Source of the DNA: Dicyema japonicum
Taxonomy: Eukaryota; Animalia; Dicyemida
Assembly: GCA_011109175.1 (NCBI GenBank)
Contig: RDEW01000007.1
Span: forward strand, 1,378,295 to 1,442,294
Reading direction: 5' to 3'
Length of the DNA: 64,000 nt
This document shows positions 2,255-62,400 of the stretch, piece by piece. The notes below the pieces were generated by a model. It did no database searches. It was not told the DNA's origin and saw only the letters and a program-made list of their open reading frames with translations. The stretch's first letter is position 1. The number at the start of each line of letters is the position of its first letter. The translations under genes and the position numbers were made by a program.

Positions 2255-4460
2255 GAAATTAATTTCTGAAGACCACAGTTAACGACAAAAACAAGAAATT
2301 ATGTGATCCCGGCGAATTTCAATAGGGCTCTCAGCTTGGTCCGGTGGTCTTCCCTCGATCCAACACAAGCACGCACTAGAAAAGTGATCCTCTGGTATCG
2401 TCGAGTTTGGCCTCCTTTTCTTCTTATTAGGTCTTCCAGGGGGTAGGTGTAAATTTAGATCGCCTTTGATCCAGTTTTCTATCACGGAAAACGATCTTTT
2501 TTGGGTTGCCCCAATTCTCTGGCATTCGTCCAAGAAATTGAGGGCCCCATGATTCACATGCATATGCTCGACGTACTGGCTGTATAGTGATTTCAGAACG
2601 AGATGACTTCCGATCTTCCATAAACCAGAGATCCCATTCAAGAGGTTGATTTTCTTTTCACATTTGTTTAAAACATTTTCCACGTGGCGCGAGAAAATCA
2701 TATAGGTGTCGAATACTACTCCCAAGATCTTCTGCCATTTTTGAATGACAACTTCCATCTGCTTCTACATCCACTGTCCTGTTGGATGTTCTCTTATCAG
2801 AGGTAAGGAGAGACGTAACCGATTGACAGACTGTTTTCACTTAACCAGTAGATTAAGCAGTTTACAAGTAATTGTAATCTCTCCGAGGGGACTTGAACGT
2901 CTTGGTCCCTGGATGCAATAACAATATCATCTCTCATAAGCTAGTAAAAGTCATCCCCATGTTCTGGAGTCGGGACATCATTCAAGAAAAGGTTGAAGAG
3001 TATAGGGGACAGAGGAGATCTTTAGGGTATTCCATTTGGAATTATACGGGAGATCGACCGTAAGTTTCCCAAACAGACCCGTACTCTTCGTCCACTGAGG
3101 AAATTCACCAGCCTGAGTTTGAAATTCCCAGGTATATCCGTCTGATAGATTTTCCTGGTGAGTCTTTTCTTGGGATGAGTCAAATGCCATGTGAATGTCT
3201 ACAGAACATAGAATTGTCTTTTTGTGCCTGGATTTGTCGGTGAACCCGAGCGAATAAAATCACTCAGGGATAGTAGGTAGGCTATTTGTCGAGTGAAGGG
3301 ATTTAAATCCGTGTTGGAATGGTTTCTCTGGGATTGTTCCTCTGATCTTCTGAAGAACTGGTTTTTCCAAAATTTTCGACATTGAAAATAGCAACGATAC
3401 CGGTCTGAATGATGCCGGGTCGTTTTTTGGTTTCCATCTTCAATATCGGGCGGATGTAGGCGAGTTTCCATAGTGAGGGATCGCGTTTTCCCTTAAAGAC
3501 CAATTATAATCTTTGTAAAGGTCCTGATCCTCTCCGGTCCAAAATTTTTCAGCAGGATAACAGGGATTCCATCGGGCCGTGGGAATAGGTAGTCTTTGTA
3601 TTTAGCAGTGCTTCTTTTACATCCGTTTCTGAAAAGTAGGAAAATAAGCGGTCCCTCTTCGGTTATTCCAAAAGAAGTTGACCTGTCTTGATCTTCCGTT
3701 TCTCTTTATGGGCAATTTTCACATAATACTTCATAATGGAATTCAGATCCTTCTGGCTGTATTCGGATTCGTCGATTGGTCTATCATCAACCCTTGATAT
3801 GTCCAGAATGATTTTCCATACTTGGGGTTGTCTGATTTAAGTTCAAAGCTGTGAGAACTCGTGACCATTTTGCTTTCTGTATTTTAAGTTCTTTGGCCTT
3901 TATATTTTCATTCAGTGCTTTCAGTCGGAGTTTTGCCTCGGTTGAGCGAATTCCAGCCTTTTGAGGCTATTCTTTCCTTGACCAAAGCCTCTTGTGTAGC
4001 AGGTGTGTCTTATTGGGGCAGCCATTTTTCTCCCTTGCAGAATGATGTCATTTATGTGATACACCGCCTTGTCAAGAAAGGAGAAATCCTCCAGATTTAC
4101 GTCAGCCAAACGATATTCAGTAATAATCCGGAAAAGGTTCCAGTTTGCGGATTTGTACATGTAGGTCGGCTTCTTTTATCACAAAATACCTCCCTCGGAT
4201 CTTCAATAAAATAGGGTTGTGGTCGCTTCTGGTATCGTATATGACGGACCAAGTTACTCTTGTAGAGAGGGTTGGAGAGCAGAGAGTGATGTCTGGGGAT
4301 GTGGGATGGTCAGAATTCCTGAAAGGGGTTGTTGTGTGTTTCGAGGGGTCATTAATGATCATCAGTTTTCCAGACTGCGAGAGTAGAAGTCTTCCTCTTG
4401 CATCGACAGGCTGACTTGACAGCCAAATGGGATGTTTGGCAATCAGGTCTCATCAGATCA
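2255..4460 (-). mobile_element. Ingi-like APE-RT LINE, internally deleted and frameshifted
   Basis: APE motifs GDLIAKHPIW and SPDIT...SDHNPI (4117-4450), RT pieces (3199-3503, 2978-3190), C-terminal LGVVFD (2279-2758); ends in the family 3' motif cgggatcacataa. Confidence 0.85.
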
Positions 4461-4529
4461 AGATATCCAGACAAACAAGCAGAAAACTTCAACCAATTAG
4501 CCACGCAGCACCACATGGCGCCAGGCGGC
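4461..4529 (-). mobile_element. SINE1 5' head (copy E) joined to the LINE APE region
   Basis: Reverse complement ccgcctggcgccatgtggtgctgcgtggctaattggttgaagttttctgcttgtttgtc matches the 5' ends at 47316, 40093 and 50066. Confidence 0.85.
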
Positions 4530-5330: not shown

Positions 5331-5679
5331 ATGTTATGTGTGAGGTATTGAGTCTATTATTAGGAATATTCGAGAATTAATTACTAATAATTTTCTTTGT
5401 TCCCCCCCCCTAAGCAAATGGTTTTTTTCAAATTCCTCCAATATGAGCGAGCTTGATAGCAACCAAAGGTCACTCTCAGGACCACTAATGTCACTAAGTG
5501 ACTTGTAACGTGCGAATACTATCAGCTGAGTACTTGATGGTATCCGCCTCCTACAACTAATATGCCCCAGACGGGATTCGAAACGAAACATTTGATTTGA
5601 CCCCCCAAATCTCATTCTAACATTAATAAATTGATGTGTCGGTCTTTCCGTAGTACTGTCTTTTTTTAAGGTTAAGAAC

Positions 5680-8459
5680 CATTTGCTCTTCCCCACCCAG
5701 ACTCTTTATGCCTGGATGGTATACCTCAACTGGAAACTCGAGATGTTGTTTGTTCCCCTGGATTCTATTGCTTTCTGGAGATATTGAACAAAACCCTGGA
5801 CCAAAACCCTTTGTTATTATGCAACTCAATGCTAACGGAATAAAAACAAAGATTCGATCTTTATTAACGAAGCACAAGATTGACATCTGCCTTATCCAGG
5901 AGTCAAAACTATCTACAAAGAGTTCAACCCCACTTTTTCCTGGATACATCTCTATCAGAAAAGACCGCATTGGACGTGGTGGCGGCTTACTCACAATTAT
6001 CAGAAACGGTCTATCCTTCCACGATGTAAGCTTGCAAGTGGATGATTTAATTCTACACGACAAGACCGCGGAACAAATTTCTATTGATCTTATTAATGGG
6101 TCAGAACATCTTATTCTAATCAACATTTACATTCCACCGCCGGGATCCTGTCCTAATAACTATGTTCCGAAGCTCGACAAACTACAAGAAATTCGAAATG
6201 TGTTGCTATGTGGGGATTTCAACGGCAAACATCCGCAATGGCTTAGTACCCAGTCGGCAGACAAGAGGGGGAGTCTAATTATCGACTCTCGAAAAAATGG
6301 TGATTCTGAATCACCCGAATGTGTTCACAAGGACACCTATCCGAAGAAATGACAACCCAACCTCCCCCGACATATCCATTGCTTCTTCTAGGATTACCCC
6401 GAAGATTTCATGGAACGTCTCCTACGATTTTCATAGTGATCAATAACTCCATTGCTTCCTCTAGGATTGCCCCGAAGATTTCATGGAACGTCTCCTACGA
6501 TAAGATTTCATGGAACGTCTCAAATTATATTAAAACTGAGCCGATTCAATAACTCGCGTAGAATTAAAGCAACCTTCAAGGTCTACAAGAAAGCTGACTG
6601 GTCGAATTTCAAGCTCTTCGTTGACAATAACCTAATACACTTTGATCCCACCTCATTTTGCTCCATCGACATGCTTAAATCAGAGAATTACAAAGCTCAT
6701 CAGAGAAAAGAAAGATAGGGCGTGGAAGCTCCTATTATCATCTATTGGACATATGAAATCCACGAGTCTTTTATGGAAAACTATTCGTCGAATCAAGCTA
6801 AACTTATCAGATGAATCAGAATCTTTTTCTGCTCCAAATACTGTGCAAGCTAACAACCTAATGAAATATTACGCATCCATAAGCCACAAGGACTTCTCGA
6901 AATCCCATTATTGTCAATTTCGGAATTTAGTGCCTAAACCAACTTCATGGATCAATCTGTTTACGCATGCCGAGGTCACACAGGCTATAAGATCGATGAA
7001 GAGATCTTTACGTGTGGACCTGACGGCATCCCGGGAATTTTGTTAAAACACCTTGGTAATGCTGCAATCAATTCAATTACGTCAATTTTTAATTTGTCTT
7101 CTAACATGAACGTCATCCCATGCAAATGGAAAAACTCACTTATAATACCGATCCTTAAACCAGGAAAACCGAAAACCTTACCTTCTTCCTACCGTCCAAT
7201 TTCATTAACGTGCGCATTATCGCGCCTAATGGAGAAACTCGTACTCTGGAAAATTAAACCCCATTTGCCCGACTGCCACTTTCAACATGGTTTCAAATGT
7301 GAGCGTTCAACTACGACACATTTGACTTCACTGTCTCAATTTATATCAGAAGGGTTCAACGTACCGAAACGCCATCTACGGACAATAGTGGTTTTCTTGG
7401 ATATCCAGAAGGCGTTCGATTCTGTCTCGAGAACATTACTCACGAAGAAGTTTTTTGACACACCATTCAGACGGATTTGAAAAGATGGATAGCCAATTTT
7501 CTCTCCGGAAGAAGAGGACGTGTCTGTATAGACCACGCAAGATCGAGGTCCCGTCTCCTACCAAATGGCGTCCCTCATGATCGCCCTCTCTCCGGCATTA
7601 TTCAACTTGTTCCTCAACGATTTACCCTGCCCTGGAGGACCAGATTCAATGCTTCTCACTTATGCTGACGACCTAATCATCGCTAGCAGGAACAAATACG
7701 TGGGTACAGCAAAATCAGAGCTTCAGTCACATATTGACGACCTGGGAGCCTGGTTGAAGTTGAATCGTCTCTCCGTATCCAGGGATAAATCAACGTATAC
7801 AATCTTCACCACGGACAGAAAAGAAAAACATACACTGGATTTGAACATTTTTGGAGACTCCTTACCACTACAGACTCGTCCAACTATCCTGGGAGTGACA
7901 TTTGACCCTTTGATGACATTTTCTCAACATGTGAAGAACGTTATGACAAAGGGTCTCAGGAAACTTAATATAATCAAACCGCTCTTGAAGTCCAAACCTT
8001 CACAGGAATGCGCCCTCGTCGTTTTCAATTAACTCCTAAAATCGACGATTGAGTACGCTTGTGCCTCATGGGCCTATGGAGCTTCGATATCAAATTCACT
8101 CAAGATCAATACCCTAATTAGTAAACTAGCACGTCAAACGAATCTACTCCCGATCTTTTCCCTCCAATGCTTGACCACGCCGCAATCAAAAATAATGGCT
8201 CCGGCTTCATCTGTCTGTGTGGCAAGTCGTTTCTTCCATTCAAGGCTAAAGGCCTCAAATACACGAAATTTGGGGAAAAACCCCACTCCTCTTCAAACTC
8301 TAATGAAAGATGATCGTCGTCTATTCAGGAAAGCCGTGGGTACTCTGGAGGAACACAGGAAAAACCTCTCGATCCTGTTGAGGCGTACCGGGATCACTTA
8401 ATTAGTTGGTTTACTCCTTCTTTCTTGGTGTTCCCTTTTCGGGTTATTAAATAAATAAA
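5680..8459 (+). mobile_element. Near full-length Ingi/L1Tc-like LINE (2A peptide-APE-RT), frameshifted
   Basis: LLLSGDIEQNPGP, then APE (IQESK, GDFNGKH), RT (YRPISL, QHGFK, FLDIQKAFD, GVPH, YADD) and LGVTFD; 3' tail cgggatcacttaattag...gggttattaaataaataaa. Confidence 0.9.
6375..6521. repeat. Nested tandem duplication inside the LINE
   Basis: About 54 nt repeated at 6375 and 6448, plus a third 20-nt copy aagatttcatggaacgtctc at 6502-6521. Confidence 0.85.
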
Positions 8460-9040: not shown

Positions 9041-9676
9041 AGAATGTAAACACTAACAAGAAATCTGGAAAATCTAACTGTCCACCAAAAACAAATAGAA
9101 ACCATGCATTAAAAAAATCTTTAAAACTTAGTAATTTTGACATTTTTTAATTGAGTTTGTTTTTAATTTTATTACCTGAAATGTCAAATGACAAATGACA
9201 GTCAATTTTTTGCTCTTTGACTTCTTCAATTCCTAAGAAGCGCTATTTGATGTACCTAACTAAATAGACGCCTGGTAGCTAACCGGCAGCCAAAAAGACC
9301 CTCTCTTCCATACTCTTGTGGAAGGCTTCCACAGTGGCAAATATAGAAGAACGTGATGTTTGGAAAATGCGTCCTACCTAGAACATGGAAACTGAATAAA
9401 AACTCTTTCATGTATATCTGACTCCTTTCTATTTTATCCTTTTTCCTCGCGGAGGGTCAGTGATCTGCCTCCTATGAGTCCAGATGTTTCCATGACGACT
9501 GGTTTAAAAATGAACTGTCGGGCTAGAAATTCGTATTTCTTAAGGGTCTCAGTTTTTTCCGAGCCTGGGTGAGTTGCTGTCATAGCATTAATTTCTGGCA
9601 TTTTATTAAATTTCTATGTCAGCCTTTAGTTCCATATAATCCACGATAACACCAGACTAACTAATCAACTGATCAT

Positions 9677-20055: not shown

Positions 20056-20344
20056 TATTTATTTATTAACCCCGGATCACCGAGAAAGAAGTTAAAGTAA
20101 ACAACTAATTAAGTGTATCCAGTTTCCACTTCTACAGAAAGAGTCCATCCGGAATCAACATAAGGGGTTAAAGACGTCCATACTTGCAGTTGTGGAAACC
20201 CCTCCAGTGGAGTCGGGGAGAGCAAATGATCCTTTTTTGTGCCGGCCTGGCACAGGGCGCCACCTGGACAGGTAAATCACATGACGCCACTCTAATAGGA
20301 AGAGAGAGGAGGAACAGACGAGCAAAACAGAAACTTCAACCAAT
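20056..20344 (-). mobile_element. SINE1 copy C (lacks the 5' hairpin)
   Basis: Colinear with 47316-47637, 40093-40402 and 49812-50066. Confidence 0.9.
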
Positions 20345-21422: not shown

Positions 21423-24342
21423 GAGAAAGACCTGGCAACCTACCCTGTATTTAAATGCCAAGAAAATCTTATGAGCAAACTCTCGTACGATCTAATTGGA
21501 TGCAACGTTACTGCAAAACATCAAATCTCGAGTCTTCGTCACACAGAATCTCACAATTTCGCAACATGGAACGTAAGAGGCTTAAACAAAGGGAAACTAG
21601 AAGTCGTAAAAAAAGAAATGAGAAGGCTTGATATTGACCTTCTTGGAGTAAGCGAACTTCATTGGATTGACAGTGGTTTTTTTCGTTCTGATGATTTCGT
21701 CATATATTATTCTGGTAACATTAATGCGAAGAGAAACGGAGTGGCCTTCATTGCTTCAAAGAAAATTGCACGTGCTATTGAAAGTCATAGAATATTTAAT
21801 GATCGGATAATACTAATCCACGTCCGTGGACGACCATTGAATATTACGGTCATGCAAGTGTATGCCCCAACATCTATTGCCAAGGATGACGAAATTGACC
21901 AATTTTATTATGAATTTCAAGAGGCACTAAAACTAATACCCAAAAAGGACATAACCTACATAATGGGGATTTCAATTCAAAAGTTGGGTGTATGCCACAT
22001 ACGGATATTGTGGGAAGTTTTGGTTTGGGGAAAAGAAATGATGCTGGGGATCGACTGGTCCAATTCTGTCAGGAAAATGGATTTCAGATAACTAACACAT
22101 GGTTCAAACAGCACAAACGACGATTATACACTTGGACGTCGCCAAATGGAATGTCTAGGAACCAGATTGATTATATTTTGTGCGCCAAACGTTGGAAAAG
22201 CTCTATAACAGCCGTCAAAACATATCCAGGGGCAGACTGTGGAACAGACCATCAGCTACTTGTTGCAAAAATTAGGACGAAATTCAGTAACACTTGGAAT
22301 ACCCCCGAGTAAAGAAATTCGATGTCTCAAACATACCACCAGAATACGCAATGGAAGTTAAGCACAATATTGGATTACTGGATTTGAACGGAAGGATGCC
22401 TGATGAATTATGGAATGATATGCAGTTGGTTATCAGGAACGCTGCAATAAAACATGTCAAATACAAAACGCCGGCCAAGTGCTCTGAGTGGCTCTCTGCC
22501 AACACCCTAAACATTGCTGAGGCTCGTAAAGCTGCTAAAGTCTCTGGGAATATAGACGAGATAAGAAAACTTAACTCTGAATTCAAAAAGGCAGCCAGGA
22601 AGGATAAAGAAGACTACTGGAGGTTACACTGCAAAAAAATGGAAGATGACTATAAGAGAGGTCACACTAGGAATGCGTATTTACAACTAAAAAGATTACG
22701 AACCCCCTTTACGAAAATGATGGGCAAAATCAAGGACAAGGATGGTGTTGAATTGCTAGGCCAACAGAACATCCGAAATCGTTGGAGAGAATATACGGAA
22801 CGGCTATATTCAGAAACTGTGTGCCCACCCATATGTGTTGATGAAGCAACGTCGGGTGAGGGGCATAAAATCCTTGAGGAGGAATGCGTGTGGGCTACAC
22901 GGCAATTAACGGGGAACAAGGCACCGGGGATTGACAACATCTCAAGCGAATTGTTGAAGGCTATACCGGTGACAGCTATCACCAGTCTATGTCAAAAAAT
23001 TTGGGAAACTGGTATTTGGCCACGTGAGTGGAAAAGATCTATATTTATTCCAATACCGAAAAAAGGGGATAGCAAGGACTGTTCAAACTATCGTACAATA
23101 GCCTTAATTCCCCACGTCAGCAAAATACTTCTAAAGATAATACAACATCGTCTAATGCCAAATGCCGAAATGATTCTACCGGATGTCCAAGCAGGATTCA
23201 GGAAGGGACGAGGCACACGTGACCATATAGCAAATGTCCGGTGGATTATGGAGAAAGCCCATGAATCCCAAAAGAGTGTATACATGTGCTTCATTGACTA
23301 TCGGAAAGCTTTTGATTCCGTTATACATGACAAGCTGTGGTCCGCTTTAAAAGAATTTGGATTCGATGCCCATCTGATATTGCTTATCAAATCTCTTTAT
23401 AAGGATCAAGAAGCTACTGTTAGAACAGTGTATGGAGATACCGATTGGTTCAAAATTGTAAAGGAGTAAGACAAGGATGCTTATTATCTCCCATCCTATT
23501 CAATATTTATGCCGAAATGATCATGACTAAATTGGATACTGTATCAAATAACGGGATTAAAATTGGAGGCAGGAACATCAATAATTTGCGCTATGCTGAC
23601 GATACAACCTTACTGGCTGAAACAGAGGATGGCCTCAGGGAGTTGATTCTAAGATTCAGAGAAGAGAGCGCCGTCTTTGGTTTATTGCTAAATATCAAGA
23701 AGACCAAAATTATGACTACTGCTAATAATGGAATAATGGAACTAAAAATTGGGAATGAGAAAATAGAGAGTTGCGATAATGTTGTCTTTCTGGGATGTCT
23801 AATTAATCGGAATGGTGACGGAGGCTTGGAAATCAAGAGGCGAATTGCCATGGGACGAGACACCTTCCAAAGAATGAATAGAATTTGGAAAAGCAAAGAT
23901 ATTTCCTTAAGGACCAAATGCAGACTAGTTAATGCAATCGTGTTCCCGGTTTTTCTATACGGCGCAGTATCATGGATATTGAAAAAGGCGGATAGACGAA
24001 AAATTGATGCTTTTGAGCTGTGGTGTTGGAGGAGGTTACTAAGAATCACTTAAAATTCCAAAATAACAAACATCGATGTACTCAAACGAGTGGAGACGAC
24101 ATTTCGCTAGAAAGAAGAATCGTAAAACACAGATTGGCGTTCTTTGGGAATGTTGTCCGCTCTGATTCACTGGAAAGAAACCTAGCCGAACCAAGGACTC
24201 GGTGGCTATCCACGGTGGAAGACGTCACGGGAATGCCTATATCAAGGCTACTCCAAATTGCAACGGATCGGGAGAGTGGAGGAAACTCGTTCATGAGATC
24301 TCCGAGGGTCGGACACGACTTAATTGGATAACATAACATAAC
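21423..24342 (+). mobile_element. RTE-clade (BovB-like) LINE, APE-RT, with frameshifts and stops
   Basis: ATWNVRGL, GVSELHW, GADCGTDHQLL, QAGFRKGRGTRDHIANVRWIMEKA, GVRQGCLLSPILF, LRYADD; 3' gtcggacacgact plus (ATAAC)3; 7-bp TSD ctcattg (21416-21422, 24343-24349). Confidence 0.95.
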
Positions 24343-35011: not shown

Positions 35012-35083
35012 GTCAGTTCCAAGCTTAGTGGTTTGAATGTCATACTATAACAATAGTCCTGGGTTCGATTCCCCCCGCTGGCT
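35012..35083 (+). pseudogene. Degenerate tRNA-like sequence, probably a solo SINE2 head
   Basis: 72 nt, ggttcgattcc B-box, partial acceptor stem gtcagt/gctggc, followed by T4; D and anticodon arms do not form. Confidence 0.55.
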
Positions 35084-35418
35084 ATTTTCTCGAAGGTTTC
35101 TCTTCCTTTTCTTGGTTTCTTATCATTTCTCATTTTACTGAAGTCTCGTCATTCGATTCGTCTACCTCGATTGACGCCCAGTGGCAGGATGACTTCCCCA
35201 TTCCATTGGAGGGGTTCCCATAACTGCGAGGACTGGATGTTTTCTTCCCTTTCCGTTGGTCCTGGATGGACTTGCGTTTGTGCAAATTGATCAGGAATGA
35301 TGTCAGAAAGTAAATAATATATCTTTTGGGAATATTAAAGTACAAAATTATATAATTTATGAATAAATCAATAAAATAATTAAATATATATTTATAAGAA
35401 CAGAAATTAATTAATTTG

Positions 35419-38201
35419 ATGTGTTTACTGTTATTGATACTCCAATACGTTTCAATGTCAAATTTGTTTGGGATCTTGATAATGGTATCCAATAAAGCTA
35501 ACATCCCCTTTATAAATAATTACTTTAAAAGTAATCAAGCAACCAATTTCAATATATCGCACCACACTGTTGCTATAAAACATAATCCCGCCGAAATGGT
35601 GGATGAACTATGCCAAAAGATTGCCTTAGTGAAACCCAATATTGTCATACACAGCTTTGACGACCAAAAGTGGAAGAAGGCCCCTCTTATTTTAAATTTA
35701 TTAAATTACATAAATATTCCAGTGATGACAATCGAATCCAAAAATAGAATTTTAAAAAATAATGTATTTTAATCTGATAAGGGCAGAATGAAATACGAAT
35801 GACCCCGACTCTGCTAGACGAGGCGAATGCATGGATACTGCTGTTGCAGCAAAATAACTGGACTTGTGTTATTTACATCCACAGTGGGGACAAGATTGGA
35901 CAGTTCATGCTGAGCAGACTTAAAAATATTACAACGAATATACACGTTTGAGTATATTATTGAGGTTAGATTCAACTAGAAATGGTGGTAACACACAAAA
36001 CTAAAAACATTTCTAGGGAATTGTTGAAAATCAAAAGATTTTCCGCGAACATTATTATCGGATTTTTTGAGTAGTCGAGTTGTAAATTTTAGGGAAAACG
36101 TCGCCCTTGACCTTGTTGAGGCGGCAAAAAAATTGAATTTGATGAACCCGCCGTATGTTTGGCTGGTTAACCAACCAATAATAAATTTAAAAACCCCTGA
36201 CGGTTTTCTTTCTGAATATTAAAGGATTGCTAACTCTAGCTAATCACCTGAACGATGAATTGAAGATTATACAGGACGCCATAAATATCATAAACTATAC
36301 CTTCAGATTCTCGAATTTAGTCAACAAGGAGTTCGCACGATTTGATAGTTGTTTCAAGGTACCAAGTAATCCTTTGGACATTTTAAAGTAAACTTATCGG
36401 TACCTCTAGTATTATCACCAAAACGAATTCTGCTGGATTTTCTGGAAAGATTAAATTCTCGTCAAGCGGGGATCGCACGTCAAACGTGTTTAGTTTACTC
36501 AACAAACAAAAAAACAAATTGATTCAAACGGGAGAAGCAATTTTAGTCGATAAACATGTAGTAAGCATATTACATGGAAGATTACTTTGAATATGAATAA
36601 GGGGAACATATTATTTCCCGGAACCTCCCTTCCGATTCCTCTCTGTAATAGAAGAACTGACTTTGGCGTTCCAAAGAACAAACTATTCAGGGTCACTTAC
36701 ATAATTCACTTTTAGGTCATTTCCAAAGAGGTCGTGCCTTATGTTATGAAACATCTTTTGAACCAATCCTGCCTTCCTGGGGAGGTGAAGTGCCTCTATG
36801 TTGATTCTTCCAGTATAATATTTTACTCGAATAGACAACAAAGCACAACATTGCTGTTTTGGATTCCTAATCGACATTTTGAGTTTATATATGAAGGAGT
36901 TAAACCTCCCCCTGGAACTCACTATCACTAACAAAACGTATGGAACCTTCGACAACGTAACGTTCAACTAACTTGTAGCACAAACAATATTTTAAATATT
37001 GGGATGGACTTATAGGAGATTTGGTTAGCGACAAGGTTGATGCTGTGTTCGCGCCTCTCTACATCACAACTGACAGGGCAAAGTTTATATCTTTTACGAT
37101 CGCTTTTGGAAACCAGGAAGTCATAATTGCACAAAATAAAGTAACTTGGCTTGTAAATCTCTCGGAAACCAAAAGAAGTCGATGTCCTCAATTTTCTAGA
37201 ACCATTTTCTGTCCAATTGTGGGTATGGATTTTGATATCAGTGAATATTATTGCTGTCGCTTTATGCTTGTTTGATTCATTCTCGACATATAAATGGGGT
37301 CAGATTATTGGAAGGGTCAATTTCTTGAGTACATTCTGGTTTTCATGGGAGTAGCCGTCAATTCAGGTCTCGGAGAAGGTCGTCCTGTTATTAATATTAG
37401 GTAATCCAAAAGTTTGTCTGGACATGCCTTGTCGTTTTTCTGGGCATTCTTTACTATGTTCATTTCCGCCTCATACACGGCACAATTGGCGGCAATGCTG
37501 GTGGTGGAACAGGCAGAATTCAATGAAGTCGTAAAATATGGATTGCCGGTATGGGAGTTGATTTGTTTTAGGGAATGGTTTTCGGAAGAAGTGAAAATCA
37601 ATTCACCTCCGAAGCCTTAATGTCCTTCGAAATGTTGGAGATATCCAAGAGAATCAAAAAAACATATCCCTCTACGGACGCGGGAATATCAGCCTTAGCG
37701 AACAAGTGGAGTTGATTTGTGACCAAAATTAGAGAAATTGACGGATTAGTGATAGAAAAGGAACGCCTTGTTTACGAAAGCTACAAAGAATGTAATTACA
37801 CAATTCTGCACATGAGTATTACTGACTTCAATTTGGGGATTGGGCTGCAGATAAACAGCTCTTACAAACCAATCCTAGATAATTTGATAAGACGTCTAAT
37901 AATGAGTAAGAACGAAGTAAGCCTCATTGTAGACGATGAGATCAATAAATTGGAGATAAAGTGGCATTTGAAATTTGCCAAAAATAACTGTTCTTTGGAG
38001 ATTGACAACTTGTTAGGAAATTTCTACAAAACAGCGGGTTTGATTAAATATGTTATTTAAGGTTTATTTGCAACCACCGTTTTTGGGATTTTTGTAAGTC
38101 AGTTAGTTCTTATTCTTGAAATATTGTCATTCAACAATTTTAAAATATTAAGAAAGTGTGCCAAATTATTTTGGATTAATTTAAAGAAAATAAACCGATA
38201 A
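35419..38201 (+). CDS. GRIN1: Ionotropic glutamate receptor, NMDA GluN1-like subunit
   Basis: CCFGFLIDIL, WDGLIGDLV...APLYITTDRA, FLEPFSVQLW, WFSW-GVAVNSGLGEG, SYTAQLAAM, GIGLQINSSYK, M4 AGLFA...ILEI; many 22-27 nt introns; one-G frameshift at 37347-37349. Confidence 0.88.
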
Positions 38202-40092: not shown

Positions 40093-40402
40093 CCGCCACG
40101 TGGTCCATGTGCTGCTACGTGGCTAATTGGTTGAAGTTTTCTGATTGTTTCGTTTGTTCCTTTCCTTTCCTATTATAGTGACGTCATGTGATCCACCTGT
40201 CTAGGTGGCGCCCAGTGCCAGGCCGGCACGAAAAAGGATCATTTGCTCTCCCCCACTCCACTGGAGGGGTTTCCACAACTGAAAGTATGGACGTCTTTTA
40301 CTCTTTATGTTGATTTTGGATGGACTCTGTAGAAGTGTAAACTGGGTACATTTAATTAGTTGTTTACTTTAACTTCTTTCTCGGTGTATCCGGGTTAATA
40401 AA
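40093..40402 (+). mobile_element. SINE1 copy B
   Basis: Colinear with the other copies; ends tcggtgtatccgggttaataaa. Confidence 0.9.
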
Positions 40403-40629
40403 TTAAAATTACTGCTACAATGCTTTTCGGAAAGCTCGAGTCCATCTGGCCTGTCTCATTGTGGGCATCACAACCTTACATGCTTACAGGAGAAAAACTG
40501 GACAATTAGACTGTCTGTGGGGATGTTCAAGTTTATCTGGCGCGTCTTCACTGTGAACATCAGCATTGTCAGTGCCAACTAATTAAATGACCCCACTATC
40601 TAATAATTCCCACACTCTCTTTGAGTGGT

Positions 40630-41640
40630 CTGCCAGTGATCCCAGCGTCTTCTGTAAGTGTCTTTTCGAATTTCTGAGAAGTAACTCGATCGGGGTATCT
40701 TTCTTCAAAACTTGTCGTACATCTTCCGCATGAATAACTTATCCTCGAAATAAATTTCCTGATTCCCTCATAAACACAGGAAACCCCAACTATTTTTTTG
40801 GTGACTCTTTCTGAAAGGCAGTAGCGCTCGATCCCCTTCTATGTGAAGGGAGAAGGTGCACAATTTTCCTCTTAAATTTTCACGGAGAAAGAGCAAGAAT
40901 CCAGGCAGAACAACCGTATTCGACGGTCGGAGCAATTATTTGATCATAAAATTTGTGGATGCAGGCCACGAGAGAGAAGGAGCTCTTCGTGTAATAACCT
41001 TTAAAACATTCCACTTTTGAGCCTCCTAGTCATGGTTTCTTCAGCACGATGAGTGAATGCCATTAACTCGTCAAAGGCAACACCAAGGATCTTTTCCCAT
41101 TTTGTGAATGGGATGCAGATGTCTTCGATGAATAACTCAGGTTCTCCCTTTAACCTCATATCTGTAGTAAAAAGGATAAACTGGGATTTGGAGGTTGATA
41201 TTGATAACATTTTGGTGAAGAGCCAGTCATCCACCAAGTTAAATTGTGACTGGAGAACTATCTCTAGCGGCAATAATATAGCCATCTAGAAACAAATCAA
41301 ATAAAATCGGAAGCAGAGGGGATCCGTGTGGGACCTTGTTAGGAAGTAAGCCAGATCTTAGATTTGCTCAATAAACGCGAATTCTTCCTCTTGGATCAAC
41401 AGCCATGTTAGAACGCATGTATTGGCATACAAGGGAGGATTAACATAAGAATAAGACTCTCAACCACTTTTGAAATGGTGTAAATTGTGGAGACGGCGAT
41501 AAGAAGATAGTTTATGTTTCGGTTTTCTCGTCTTCAAGATCGGCGTAATTAGTGAGTTTTTCCAGATATTCAAAATTGTGTGTGAAATGAGAAAAAAATG
41601 TATAAATCCTTTAACACTATCATCGTCCGAAGACCTAGGT
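40630..41640 (-). mobile_element. Ingi-like LINE fragment
   Basis: ILKTRKP...SYR, ILGVAFDELMAF, 3' ctgggatcact motif. Confidence 0.75.
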
Positions 41641-42899: not shown

Positions 42900-43740
42900 T
42901 CACTAAATTTCTACCGAACGGGGTCCCGCAAAGATCCCCTCTCCCATTCTATCCAACCTATTCATGAGCGACATGCCTTCCTACAGCTGCGACGATACCC
43001 TATTTCTTGCTTACGCCGATGACTTAATCCTGTGAACAAGAGTCAGTGCATCCACACAGCGGGTACCCGCTTACAAGATTCATTGGATAACCTGAACTGT
43101 TGGCTTACGAAGAAACAACTACATACAAGTCCTGAAAAGTCGTGCTCTATGATCTTTACTTCCAATATAAAATTGACTAACTTGGTTCCTCCATTGACTT
43201 TAAATGGAATAACAATCCCCTCCACAAATTCAACCGAAATACTTGGGGTCACATATGACCCACTAATGACCTTCAGAAACATGTGAGCAACATAATCTCC
43301 TTTTCCCAGAGAAAATTAAACTTTGTAAAAACGCTACTTGGATACTACAAGAGATGGTTCCACCCAACAGTAGATCATCTCTATTACCAATACATACTTC
43401 CGTCAATCAGTTACTGCTGCGCGGCATGGGGTACTAACATATCTTACACCAACCTAAAGAAATTAAACTCCTTCCAAGAGACAGTAACGAAAACCCTACA
43501 AAGATCCACCTCCTCGTCATTAAAACCAACCACGTTCGAGGAACTCGTGGGGAAAACGGGAGCTCAGTCAAAACCCCCTAAACTTCCAAAAATGATTCGT
43601 TCATACAGGAAGTGTGTCGGCACTCGGAAAGAACACCGAGGAAAGATGAGGCGGCTGCTCAAGGGGGCAAAAATGACCTGACGGCCCCTACTATCCTTTG
43701 TTTTGTCGGTGATTCTTGATTTTTAAATTTAAAAAAAGTA
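42900..43740 (+). mobile_element. Ingi-like LINE 3' half
   Basis: GVPQ, AYADD, ILGVTYDPLMTF, YILPSISYCCAAW. Confidence 0.85.
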
Positions 43741-44748: not shown

Positions 44749-45433
44749 ATCTTGTATATTAGTTCGATAGTACCGTTTATTGTGGGTGAATATGCCACAC
44801 GGCTTCCTCACAAGGACCTCAAATGGGGTTGCCCTTATTGGTAGTCCTGTGATTCGAGAGATTGTTTTAGTTCTTTTTGATTGAGGTGAGTTGATCTTAT
44901 CAATGTTTGTTTTACCAAGTTTTGTTCCCCAAGCTGCAGTTCGATAACTTATAGTGGGCTCGATGAATTGGGTGTACAACTTGGGTGATGACCGGTTTGA
45001 GGATCCTTTAAAATTTGAGACGATCGCTTTCATGAAGTTAAGCTTTCGTGTCGAAGCACTAATTACGTTTCCCACATTTGTGCTGAATGTCATGAGGGCG
45101 TCAAATGGTACTCCCAGAATCTTAGCATTTTCTTGTGTGGGATAAGTTTACCATTCAAAAACAGTTCGGCGGAATAATTTGATAGCCTACAATTCGACGT
45201 AAAGAGAGAGGTCGAGGACTTTTCTGTAGACTTTAACAAAAAATTGTAGAATGGATAATGAAGCCAATATACAAAGGTACCCATTATTTGATTGTTTGGA
45301 TACAGAGAAATACCCTGTAGTAGAACAAAATTATTCATTTTATTGCGGACTACCCCACGGTTCTCCTTATCAATCTTTTCCTCCACGACCTACCAAATTA
45401 CGAGGAAGAATTTTTTTATTATCCTACGCAGAT
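44749..45433. mobile_element. Ingi-like LINE fragment with an internal inversion
   Basis: 44749-45247 is minus-strand post-RT sequence; 45250-45433 is plus-strand RT motifs (GLPHGSP, NLFLHDLP, SYAD). Confidence 0.75.
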
Positions 45434-47100: not shown

Positions 47101-47315
47101 TAGTGATTCGGGTCGATGACATCACAACAGAAAACCCGGAAGACACAGACAGATCTTTCAAAACAAGACCGTCTCTATTCGTCCCCAGACAACCAACGAG
47201 GTATCTTTTATTTATAGTAATAATATATTAATATTAAAAATAAAAAGAAAATTTATGGATAAAAATTACAACTCAATTTAATTAAGTTCAAAAATCGTAT
47301 CCGACATGTGATTAA

Positions 47316-47637
47316 CTGCGTGGCGCCATGTGGTGCTGCGTGGTTAATTGGTTGAGGTTTTCTGCTTGCTTGTCTGTTCCTCCTCTCTCTTCCTATTAGA
47401 GTGGCGTCATGTGATCCACCTGTCTAGTTGGCGCCCAGTGCCAGGCCGGCACAAAAAAGGATTATTTGCTCTTCCCCACTCCATCGGAGGGGTTTCCACA
47501 ACTGCATGTAATGGACGTCTTTAACCTTTTATGCTGATTCCGGATGTACTCTGTTTCTGTAGAAGTGGAAACTGGATACACTTAATTAGTTGTTTACTTT
47601 AACTTCTTTCTCGGTGTATCCGGGGTTAATAAATAAA
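47316..47637 (+). mobile_element. SINE1 copy A (complete)
   Basis: 5' 12-bp hairpin, internal pseudoknot-forming block, LINE-like tail cacttaattag...ccggggttaataaataaa. Confidence 0.92.
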
Positions 47638-49812
47638 TGTCGCGTGGCTCACCTACGATGTGGTGGCATTGCACAATTTATGTGGAAAAAAGCCGCAAAA
47701 TCTCTATCCCTTTTTCATTAAGACGTGGATGGTGTCGTGCATTATTACTTATTTCCGGCGATGTCAAACCGAATCCAGGACCGCCATTGATTATTGCCCA
47801 AATCAACATAAATGGAATTCGAACAAAGATTATTGAACTTAACGATTTTTTCAGTCCAACTCAGTGGATATCGCTCTAATTCAAGAGTCAAAGCTTACTC
47901 ATAAAGATTCAACTCCAACGTTTCCTGGATATTACGTACTCCGGAAAGACCGAAAATTCCAAGATGAACGCGAAGAGCCCAATTTGGTACACAAATCAAC
48001 TATTGGAACAAAGATGATCTATTATGTTAGACAACATTGACGACTTGGGAATCCTTAACAACAGGAATAAACACACAAGAACTCCTTCAAGAAATGGTGA
48101 CTCTCCTACCTCACCAGATCTGACTCCCTATCCTTTTTCCGAACTTTTCCTCGATAGATGCAACCGTTGGATTTATTAATGAAAATATTTTGCAAGCCCG
48201 AAAAAAGTTTATTCCAATGGGACGATTCAAGACTTTCAGATAACTTCGACACAGAAACGAGAGTCCTTGTTACAAGAAGAAATAAACTAAAGAAAACTAT
48301 AGATAAAACAACATCCTTGAATACTGAAATTACAGATCTGAATTAGGAAATTACCAAAAGGATCAGAAATAAAAACAAATCGAATATTTCAAACCGCTGG
48401 AGGTATTTTCATGCAACTAAATACATGAAAAATACAAAATCCAAAGGGGCGGATGACATTTCAATAACTGAATTGAGACACTTGTGCCAATAGCAATCGA
48501 TGCCCTTACTGAGAATTTCAATTACTCAGTGAATAGAAATGAGATTCCCTCATTATGGAAAAAATCACTTATACATCCAGTACCTAAAAAGAACAAAGCC
48601 TTAGACAACCCCTGGAGTTATCGTCAAATATCGATTCTTTGTGGCCTTTCAAGAACATTGGAAAAATTAATCTTTCACAAGATTACTCATTCGCTTGATC
48701 TTGCAAGTTTCCAACATGACTTCAGATCGAGATACTCAACTTCAACACATCTAACAAAACTAACTCAGTTCATCTTGGATGGACTGAACTACTGAAAATC
48801 ACATAAAAGAACGGTACTTGTCGCTCTGGATATCGAGAAGGCGTTTGATTCGGTACCGAGGAAACTCTAACAACAAAAAATATCCATCCGAAAATCCAGA
48901 TGTGGCTGGCCAATTTCATTAATGGTAGAAGAGGCCAAGTTATCATGAATAATAGAAAATCAAGACAACAAAACCTCCCCAAACGGGGTCCTTCAAGGAT
49001 CCCCTTTATCACCAACCTTGTTCAATTTATTTACAAGAGACCTTCCAAATCCAAACATCCAAAATACCATCTTTCTGCCTTATGCCGACGATCTCATTGT
49101 CGCAGCAAGACACCAAGACCATAAAGAAGCTGCGCGAAGGGTTCAGGAGGCCCTCGACATTATGAACACATGGTTCCTCAAAAACCACATGAAAATATCC
49201 TCTGGGAAGTCGAACACTGCGATTATCCTACAGGAAACATACATCCTTCGATCCTAAAGTAACTTTGAATGGAGAGCTTATCCCAGTTAATAAGAACCCA
49301 TCAATCCTTGGAGTTACATATGACCCGTTGAAGACGTTCACACATCATGTGGACACAATAATTTCAAGAGTTCAAAAAAATGGGGATCCTCAAGACCTTT
49401 GCTAGATCTCCAATATCTTCACTTTCTCATATCAAGTTATTACAAACAATATATTCTACCGACAATGGTACATGTATGTACGGCGTGGATTACCCCTTGT
49501 CAATATCCACGCAGAACAAATTAGAGGTCATACAAAACCAATGCCTCCGGATCCTTCTTAATGTAAATGACGCCTACGTCAGAAATGATAAAAACTTTAG
49601 ATCTCAAAAAGTCATTCTTGAAAATGGTGCGATTTTTTGGTAGCCCCCTTGAAAATGAGTTTCTTGCCTACCAGAAGATCAAACCTTCCCCCTTTTGGAC
49701 GATAAGAAAAGATTGCAGACAAAGTCGAAACAAAGGGACGCACTGACACCGGGATCATTTAATTAGACGAAAACTTTTTCCTCTTTCCTGTGTTCCCGGG
49801 GTTATAATAATA
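47636..49812 (+). mobile_element. Ingi-like LINE with 5' pseudoknot and degenerate 2A, decayed
   Basis: LLLISGDVKPNPGP, APE start, SYRQISIL, FQHDFR, AYADD-like YADD, ILGVTYD; 3' cgggatcatttaattag...ccggggttataataataa. Confidence 0.88.
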
Positions 49813-50066
49813 ACTAATTAAGTGTATCCAGTTTCCACTTCTACAGAAACAGAGTCCATCCTGAATCAACATAAGACGTCCATACTTGCAGTTGTGGAAA
49901 CCTCTCCAGTTGAGTGGGAGATACCAAATGATTCTTTTTCGTGCCAGCATGGCACTGGGGCCACCTAGACAGGTTGATCACATGACCCCACTCTAATAGG
50001 AAGAGGAGGAGGAACAAACAAAAACTTCAACCAATTAACCACAAAGCACCACATGGCGCCACGCGG
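49812..50066 (-). mobile_element. SINE1 copy D (last ~45 nt missing)
   Basis: Colinear with copy A; abuts the LINE tail. Confidence 0.9.
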
Positions 50067-60179: not shown

Positions 60180-60565
60180 TTATACTTTATCAGGCTATTG
60201 AGGGTGTTTGGCGTTGAGGTAATATAATATTTCCCAGTTCATAGATTATATCCAGTTTTGGGACATAGTTCCAACGGGGGAATGTATAAGTTGATCAAAA
60301 TGAGGTGATCTGATCCATTAACGATATCGATCGAAATTTGTTCAGCTGTTCGATCAGCCTGATAAACTAGCGGTACAGGCCCCATCCGAAATCAAACATT
60401 TCTCCCGATAGAAGGAGAAGACAGTTACCCCGTCTAGGGGCTTTCCATCTCCACGATCCAGGCTCAAAGGTTCCAGAGACGCGGGAACCCATCCACCTCA
60501 AGAGAGCGCTGTACAATCCCGTGATAGTTGCATGCCTCGGAACCTGCCTCTGCTGAGGCGGCATT
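60180..60565 (-). mobile_element. Ingi-like LINE 5' relic with decayed 2A
   Basis: RRGNCLLLLSGE parallels RRGWCRALLLISGD at 47720; NYVPKLD shared with the 5680 element. Confidence 0.6.
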
Positions 60566-60859: not shown

Positions 60860-62400
60860 ATGAAGGAAGATTGTTTTAAAAGTCTACACATTCACTCATG
60901 GGAAATGAGCAAGAGGATTCGTTCCTGTGAGAGGGATAGAAAAAGGCCAAGATTAAACAGGAGAGGAATAACCTCATTTCCATCCCAAGAAAACAGACCC
61001 TATCACGAGTATGTGGAATACTCTTCTGGGTTTCACCAACTCTGTGAGTACGCATCCTTGTGAAGACCTGGAAAACAAGAACTTTTTAAACAAGACTAAT
61101 TCTTCGGTGAGTTTTATCAGAAAATTGAGGGTCCTTCCGTTTCATCAAACTAAAACGTAACCTCACATGGTCTTTCGATGAATGATTCAAAATCAATTTA
61201 TTCCAGCGGTCCAGATGGAATCCTTATAATGGTATTACAGAAGATATGCTATCATGGACCTCACCCGATTTTTCAACTTCTCTATCAACAGAGCTCCAAC
61301 TCTTTCTTGTGGAAATTATCTAATATACGAACAATTTTAAAACCAGGACTCGAATATCTTTTCTATGTGCCTCTTCAAAACTCTCAATCAGATTAGACCT
61401 TACCTTCGGACGTATTTTTCAAATATGGATTTAAGAAGGGTCACTCTACAACTACTCAACGAAATTCATAAATGAGGGCCTACAATGCAAACCTCAAAAG
61501 ACCCTTATGATCTCCACTGAAGGCTTTTGACTCGATTTAAGAAATTACTAGGAAGATCTTTGTATCCAACATTTCTTTGGATTACAAACTTCCTCATAGG
61601 ACGAAGAGGACGTTCCACATATTACGTCACTAAATCTTTACCAAACGAATACCACATGGATCTCTACTGTCACATATTCTCTTCAACCGCTTTATGAGAG
61701 ATATGTCTTCCCATAGTAGGGACAAAACTCTGGTTGTCGCTTATGCTGACGACATAATCGCATCAACAAGAAACTAATGTGTTCACACAGCGAGTACCCG
61801 CTCACAGGATTTACTGGACAACCTGTTGGCTTATGAGGAACCTATTACACACAATCTCTAAAAAGTCATCCACAATGATTTTTACCTCCAAACTCAACTC
61901 AAATTTTTTAATCCTTAGTGGAATATCAATCCCCTCCAATAACTCTATCAAAATACTAGTGATCACATACGACCCTCTTATGACTTACAGCAAGCAACTT
62001 CATGTCCTCCTCCCAACAAAAGCCAAATTTTGTAAAAACACTTATTGGATACTACAAAGGATGTTTATACTCAAAGTTAAGCCACATTTCAACCACGAAT
62101 AGCTTCTGATGTGCGGGATGGGGCACAAACCTGTCATATATGAACCTAAAGAAAATCAATGTCTTTCAAAAAACAGTCACGGGGCCTACAAAGGTTCTCC
62201 TTCTTTCCACTAATGTGAATTCAGTCCGAAGAACATGTGAGGAGAATGTGAGCCCAATTGAAATCTCCGAAATTCAGAAAAGTATCTCATATAATGCGTC
62301 GGTTCAAAGAAGGAACACCGAGAAAGTATGCTTAAGGATGCCGGGGTCACCTGTCAGCCAACTTAATGCCTTTAATTTGTCGGTAATTTTTGAGATATAA
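60860..62400 (+). mobile_element. Ingi-like LINE relic
   Basis: SSGPDGI, ILKPG, AYADD, VITYDPLMTY. Confidence 0.8.

Follow-up and report, generated by a model that had tools for sequence, protein, structure and literature searches.

A putative HDV-ribozyme-type double pseudoknot at the 5' end of an L1Tc/ingi-related LINE and within SINEs of Dicyema japonicum

Ribozymes like that of hepatitis delta virus (HDV) are known at the head of long interspersed nuclear elements (LINEs), and in trypanosomatids they are common to non-autonomous elements as well. The question raised by a stretch of 64,000 nucleotides of the dicyemid Dicyema japonicum (contig RDEW01000007.1, hereafter the window; coordinates are those of the window, on the plus strand unless marked (-)) is whether a LINE found there, LINE-A (47636..49815), begins with such a fold, and whether the fold still cuts. 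In the window a LINE carries at its 5' end a double pseudoknot that has been maintained; homologous elements of the L1Tc type are present, and LINE 5' sequence has been transferred into short interspersed nuclear elements (SINEs). We hold with moderate confidence that the first 61 nt of LINE-A form a genuine double pseudoknot of the HDV-ribozyme type that evolution has maintained, that LINE-A, an L1Tc/ingi-related LINE, has this stretch as its 5' module, and that the copies seen here are probably poor cutters or do not cut. As predicted from the sequence, the layout of the LINE is the fold, a short leader open reading frame (ORF), a 2A peptide, an endonuclease and a reverse transcriptase (RT), and we read the fold as a diverged module of the type of the L1Tc ribozyme (L1TcRz).

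The first 61 nt of LINE-A (47636-47696), checked pair by pair with a script, give an HDV-type double pseudoknot with the strand order P1-P2-P3-P3'-P1'-P4-P4'-P2', and all helices of the initial annotation were found where it had placed them. P1 (47636-41 / 47665-70, AATGTC/GGCATT) has 6 bp including one U.G at position 5, and P2 (47644-49 / 47691-96, GTGGCT/AGCCGC) has 6 bp, also including one U.G. P3 (47651-53 / 47662-64, ACC/GGT) encloses an L3 of 8 nt (47654-61), and P4 (47672-75 / 47681-84, CACA/TGTG) is followed by J4/2 (47685-90), which reads GAAAAA. In a nested double pseudoknot P3' is contiguous with P1', and both LINE-A and the SINE1 consensus have this arrangement.

The same order of helices is present in all four copies of SINE1 in the window, as had been proposed, with pair defects confined to single copies. 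The folds lie at 47403-65 in copy A (47315..47638), 40180-242 in copy B (40105..40406), 20226-88(-) in copy C (20057..20344(-), 5'-truncated within its head) and 49928-89(-) in copy D (49809..50064(-), 3'-truncated where LINE-A ends). Their helices are P1 GGCGTC/GGCGCC, P2 GTGATCC/GGATCAT, P3 ACC/GGT and P4 TGCC/GGCA, with an L3 of 6 nt and a J4/2 of C(G/A)AAAAA. Copy B has one A.C mismatch, its P1 starting GACGTC; copy A carries GTT for GGT, hence one P3 mismatch; and two P2 pairs are broken in copy D. P1 of copy D also shows a compensatory C-G to G-C change (ggggtc/ggcccc), the sole two-sided change among the four. The copies are 94% identical to each other, and with one compensatory event among them the proposal that the fold is conserved by covariation within SINE1 is not supported as worded; the covariation is instead between the lineages LINE-A, SINE1 and SINE2.

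Between LINE-A and SINE1 the stems differ in sequence while pairing is kept, in agreement with the initial annotation: we found three two-sided compensatory changes in each of P1, P2 and P4, nine in total. Local alignment of the two detected no significant similarity, so that the likeness is one of pairing and not of letters. Among dinucleotide-preserving shuffles the fold was formed by 0 of 20,000 for LINE-A and by 2 of 20,000 for the SINE1 consensus. A loose descriptor (P1 6 bp, P2 6 bp, P3 3 bp, P4 4 bp, flexible joiners), run over both strands of the window, gave 14 loci, of which the other 13 were mostly A+T-rich and none lay at a recognised LINE 5' end. Two models were built from the alignment of the four SINE1 copies only, a covariance model with P1, P3 and P4 (R1) and a sequence-only model (R3); a further model had P2, P3 and P4 (model R2). 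R1 matched 47636-47699 from end to end and formed all the pairs in the model (9.9 bits, rank 6 window-wide), and R3 did not find the LINE-A start in the window. Another R1 match, at 9432-9499(-), lacks both P2 and a SINE body and was dismissed as chance. In the alignment fitted with R1, which is fitted to structure and hence leans toward structure, 96.9% of the cells pair and six pairs are two-sided (three in P1, three in P4), a result reached by 0 of 500 shuffles; when the 3' partners were slid along the same alignment, pairing fell to 34-70% and no more than one change was two-sided. Since the J4/2 lengths differ, the pairs of P2 were counted by script: LINE-A keeps 6 of 7, and compared with SINE1 it has three two-sided changes and two one-sided ones that preserve pairing. 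SINE2, the third lineage, retains P2 by a G-C to C-G swap.

Downstream of the fold, LINE-A has the parts expected of the element that the initial annotation had described, an ingi/L1Tc-like LINE with the fold upstream of a 2A. It is a decayed, internally deleted non-LTR (long terminal repeat) retrotransposon of the apurinic/apyrimidinic endonuclease (APE) type, with many frameshifts. Its ORF starts with the ATG at 47637, inside P1 and directly after an in-frame TAA, and there is no separate 5' untranslated region (UTR). A 2A (StopGo) motif, GDVKPNPGP (47757..47783), precedes the N-terminus of an AP-type endonuclease; RT fragments follow at 48484-49643, and the 3' tail (49745-49815) aligns as a homologue with those of LINE-B and SINE1. 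LINE-B (5631..8456) is a sister 2A LINE with Exo_endo_phos (APE) and RVT_1 (RT) domains by Pfam and the 2A motif GDIEQNPGP (5777-5803); from ~5680 through the 2A-coding region its leader is a homologue of the SINE1 body, and its tail lies at 8391-8456. The only named relatives of the LINE-B endonuclease ORF are Trypanosoma cruzi 'endonuclease-reverse transcriptase' proteins (32-33% identity, E about 1e-15), which are those of L1Tc, and LINE-B and T. cruzi L1Tc have the same 2A motif, LLLSGDIEQNPGP. Placement in the L1Tc/ingi clade is by these nearest named relatives and the 2A motif, not by a tree. Protein searches with the LINE-A N-terminal ORF and an RT piece were blank or returned matches to 2A repeats only. 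A set of proteins (P0005-P0020, ENA sample ERZ26222911), 35-42% identical to LINE-B, has a leader, a 2A (LLLSGDVHPNPGP), a PHD-type zinc finger and an endonuclease. Both 2A LINEs of the window start right after TTAATAAAT-like sequence (47630-47640, 5620-5632), and LINE-A forms a head-to-tail junction with the tail of SINE1 copy A. Such starts may have arisen by insertion into (TAAA)n tails, or by a template switch from the 5' end of LINE RNA to SINE RNA; no convincing target-site duplications were found around SINE1 copy A and LINE-A.

Experiments have shown L1TcRz to be active as an HDV-like ribozyme, and it is an internal promoter as well (PMC3185411, PMC3383444). Its signature, Pr77, is common to L1Tc, ingi, NARTc, RIME and SIDER, and SIDER2 has a second, internal one (PMC3185411, PMC4035085). 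In one L1Tc 5' end (L001), Pr77 is found at L001:1512-1588 and, like the LINE-A fold, is traversed by the called ORF. The P3/L3 core of Pr77 (CACCU, 6-7 nt, GGUG, then P1') matches LINE-A at 19 of 23 aligned positions, a score reached by 37 of 3000 shuffles; for SINE1 the comparison with Pr77 was not significant (501 of 3000). The L1Tc/ingi resemblance that had been noted is strengthened by the homologous endonuclease, by the identical 2A of LINE-B and by the CACCU-loop-GGUG core in common with Pr77; the likeness of LINE-A to the 77-79-nt signature covers the P3/L3 core. In both systems an APE-type LINE that encodes an N-terminal 2A begins with an HDV-type fold, the ORF is open through the fold, P3 is ACC/GGU within the CACCU...GGUG core, endonuclease and 2A are homologous, and non-autonomous derivatives have the fold too, SIDER2 with an internal copy. 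The Dicyema module differs in its animal host, in a sequence unrelated outside the P3/L3 core, in a longer and cleaner P2, in a LINE-A J4/2 that is an A run without C, and in that the SINE1 and SINE2 folds stand behind unrelated heads; it is known here from sequence, and its cleavage and promoter activities are putative.

R2, RTE and other animal LINEs also have HDV-like ribozymes at the 5' end, for which roles in the processing of co-transcripts and in the translation of uncapped RNA have been proposed. The module shares with these the nested double pseudoknot at a LINE 5' end, but the LINE clades are different, no Rfam model matches it, and the 7-bp P1, the J4/2 C and the G-C P1.1 are incomplete here.

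How the fold came to lie within SINE1 is shown by the architecture of the repeat. SINE1 consists of a head and CT-rich spacer of ~85 nt, a LINE 5' part (fold and leader) and a LINE 3' tail, so that its fold is internal, ~85 nt from the 5' end of the repeat. Copy A has all of these: head and spacer, fold, a body derived from a LINE leader, and a LINE-type tail that ends in (TAAA)n and abuts LINE-A. The body, from directly after P2' through the stretch equivalent to the 2A-coding part, is a homologue of the leader of LINE-B (score reached by 0 of 1000 shuffles). SINE1 received two parts from a LINE of the LINE-B family, one from the 5' end (the fold, and the leader up to and including the 2A-coding sequence) and the other the 3' tail; these parts were placed behind an unrelated head and the whole was then greatly amplified. 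The head gave two chance-level matches only in Rfam (E 5 and 8.4) and no tRNA in ARAGORN. SINE2 (35020..35330) has the same core and body, a different tail, and a different head with a perfect tRNA-type T-arm (GGGTTCGATTCCC). Its fold remnant (35140-35193) has all 7 pairs of P2 (GTCATTC/GGATGAC) and 4 of the 6 of P1; P4 is deleted, as is the A-rich J4/2, and the loss of P4 argues for relaxed constraint there.

Two further observations concern the SINE1 head. It occurs alone at 4468-4526(-), 93% identical to 47318-47376 and followed by unrelated sequence, which hints that the head is a separable module. Its start (47320-47336, GTGGCGCCATGTG) resembles the P1-J1/2-P2 strand of the fold (47401-47417, GTGGCGTCATGTG); the comparison of head start and strand (GTGGCGYCATGTG) was marginal, reached by 43-504 of 2000 shuffles, and by analogy with SIDER2 the likeness could be the relic of a second, degenerate copy of the fold. 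DNA pattern scans for more SINE1 copies found none in collections of metagenome and viral sequence; a 20-nt pattern from the SINE1 body that occurs in eight marine metagenome contigs (L002-L009) belongs to an unrelated tandem coding repeat and was rejected.

SINE bodies built from LINE 5' parts have been described for RTE and Vingi (Kojima 2018, PMC5786205), and SINE1 and SINE2 resemble those families in the order of head, LINE 5' part and LINE 3' tail and in being modular, with swapped heads and tails. The same paper argues that a 5' ribozyme would behead such SINEs, and a ribozyme-type fold inside them is not described there; here, in contrast, a SINE family of very high abundance has kept the fold. 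Among the papers searched, we found none linking HDV-like folds with Vingi/ingi-like LINEs or with SINEs of molluscs or cephalopods.

Several results weigh against reading the start of LINE-A as a maintained HDV-type module. LINE-A lacks the catalytic C, none being present between P4 and P2' (47685-47690). The first three bases of its P1 (AAT) overlap the (TAAA)n tail of SINE1 copy A and could belong to that tail, so that the first base of LINE-A is defined only to within ~3 nt. LINE-A is the one fold-bearing LINE copy in the window; the fold was searched for in the first ~45 nt of LINE-B and is not formed there, although that copy may be rearranged at its 5' end. The E-value of the R1 match to LINE-A (0.39 window-wide) is not significant alone, model R2 misses LINE-A, the J4/2 lengths differing by 2 nt, and R1 run on L1Tc does not recover Pr77. 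P3 is identical in LINE-A and SINE1 and contributes no covariation. RNAalifold favours an extended P1 of 8 bp that competes with P3, and this extension is retained in LINE-A through one-sided changes. The nested minimum free energy (MFE) prediction for LINE-A is another structure altogether (-16.0 kcal/mol, z -0.67); the nested halves of the proposed fold, at -7.5 and -11.4 kcal/mol, are less stable than this, the energy of the pseudoknot not being included in these values. The MFE folds of LINE-A and SINE1 differ from each other, and only the HDV-type arrangement is common to both. In Rfam, finally, neither a scan of the window at gathering thresholds nor scans at E<=10 of the fold and of the SINE2 region returned a significant match, of HDV type or otherwise. 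The proven L1TcRz (in L001) is likewise missed by Rfam, and the blank on the window therefore says little.

The question of cleavage turns on the catalytic core and on the boundaries of the SINE copies. The core is atypical, as had been noted, in the LINE-A J4/2 without C and in the 6-nt L3 of SINE1. The initial annotation had an A in place of the catalytic C of LINE-A; the C is indeed absent, but the base aligned to the SINE C is G47685, and the A run begins after it. Boundaries were judged from contigs of four runs of one sample, mapped to the region at 80% likeness, which show copy boundaries and depth, not transcript ends. Summed contig depth over the SINE was ~40 to 600 times that over LINE-A, a ratio that is not a copy number. 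Loose contig ends clustered at 47318 (28-35 per run) and at 47634-47638 (31-106 per run); none at 47402/47403 was among those listed, and depth did not rise downstream of P1. All four SINE1 copies of the window keep sequence upstream of P1. Together, the end clusters, the flat depth and these four copies indicate that SINE1 propagates with its head attached. Among the listed positions at which LINE-A differs from other copies with full support, none fell in 47639-47696, while 47720 and 47745 were included; this is weak evidence that the LINE-A fold is close to its family consensus.

Could the modules nevertheless be fully active ribozymes today, with both the LINE family and the SINE1 consensus cutting efficiently 5' of P1? 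The C of the SINE J4/2 would then be the general acid, and the LINE would rely on other copies that have a C or on a substitute base. The SINE1 core has features that fit: a C directly after P4 in 4 of 4 copies (e.g. 40229, 47452), followed by an A run, (G/A)AAAAA, like that of the HDV J4/2, and a P1.1 of 2 bp (UG/CA) that is possible in 3 of 4 copies. In addition a U precedes P1, and LINE-A begins at P1 to within ~3 nt. The same C can alternatively pair with the G preceding P4, giving a 5-bp P4. J1/4 of LINE-A is a single G, which allows a P1.1 of at most 1 bp, as is also reported for L1TcRz (PMC3185411). Efficient cleavage, however, would breed headless copies (argument in PMC5786205), whereas the four SINE1 copies keep head and spacer, loose ends fall at 47318 and not, among those listed, at 47403, and there is no step in depth after P1. 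LINE-A has G and then A residues at the catalytic position, no alternative base with full support is listed for 47639-47696, the SINE L3 is short, and SINE2 is without P4 and J4/2. We consider full present-day activity unlikely.

About equally unlikely, in our estimate, is the explanation that the structured RNA was never a ribozyme in this lineage and has converged on an HDV-like topology as a binding site for a LINE protein, a block to 5' exonuclease or an element for translation start. It would account for helices that are kept while catalytic features are weak or absent, for the AUG and ORF start inside P1, and for the retention of the fold behind SINE heads. But the proteins of the LINEs are related to those of L1Tc, in which the module at the same 5' position has been proven to be an HDV-like ribozyme (PMC3185411), the P3/L3 core is similar to that of Pr77, and descent from a ribozyme is simpler than convergence. 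It is more doubtful still that the stretch is mainly an internal promoter acting at the DNA level, like Pr77, with RNA pairing secondary. The same 77 nt of L1Tc are both promoter and ribozyme (PMC3383444, PMC8190864), and the LINEs here have no separate 5' UTR; a promoter, however, would conserve sequence and not pairing, and here the sequence has diverged beyond recognition and the pairs are kept, and SINE2 has its own tRNA-type head. Least probable of all are chance pairings or plain hairpins (extended P1 and P4) with no pseudoknot and a SINE likeness due to recent common descent, since the near-identity of the SINE1 copies, the stability of nested folds lacking P2 and the R1 E-value on LINE-A are outweighed by the shuffles, by a P2 kept in three lineages with two-sided changes, by the position of the fold exactly on the LINE 5' end, and by the HDV-type fold being the one that LINE-A and SINE1 share.

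The reading we prefer is therefore that of a diverged L1TcRz-type module, and for the copies of the window the indirect evidence leans to non-cleaving or weakly cleaving. They are probably poor cutters or non-cutters because the LINE-A J4/2 lacks a C, SINE1 keeps its head, and SINE2 lacks P4 and J4/2; it is probable, too, that the SINEs carry or keep the fold as a structure rather than as an active ribozyme. By analogy with L1Tc and R2, the module of active LINE masters would cut, or would once have cut, read-through transcripts just 5' of P1, most likely as it does in L1Tc. The LINE RNA would then begin with a compact knot that may protect its uncapped end, with the ORF start within the knot, and the 2A would free the enzyme from an arbitrary leader peptide. 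In SINE1 and SINE2 cleavage is presumably absent or inefficient, because cutting would remove the head (the general point is made in PMC5786205).

Other features of the window may be recorded briefly. Seven fragments of related LINE RT or endonuclease sequence lie at 2639-3576(-), 22879-23322(+), 41016-41564(-), 42940-43339(+), 45019-45147(-), 60220-60355(-) and 61667-62000(+), none with a recognisable 5' end or 2A. SINE2 is situated just upstream of a candidate GluN1-like gene region (35419-38201).

If the preferred reading is right, the L1Tc-type arrangement of fold, 2A and endonuclease would extend to an animal genome. It would also be a case of the fold persisting in the middle of a very abundant SINE family, a setting in which an active ribozyme ought to defeat itself. 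One tentative possibility is that the knot is a selected, non-cleaving RNA module, a signal derived from the LINE 5' end that the SINEs must carry, and that it may, for example, recruit the protein of the partner LINE or the ribosome, or shield the RNA. If so, an HDV-type fold would be conserved for a non-catalytic role, and with copies in each genome of the order of ten thousand it would be present in many host transcripts. These observations raise the question of what LINE 5' parts do in SINE bodies, and of whether thousands of these folds embedded in host transcripts may cut or stabilise them, as has been proposed for SIDER2 of Leishmania.

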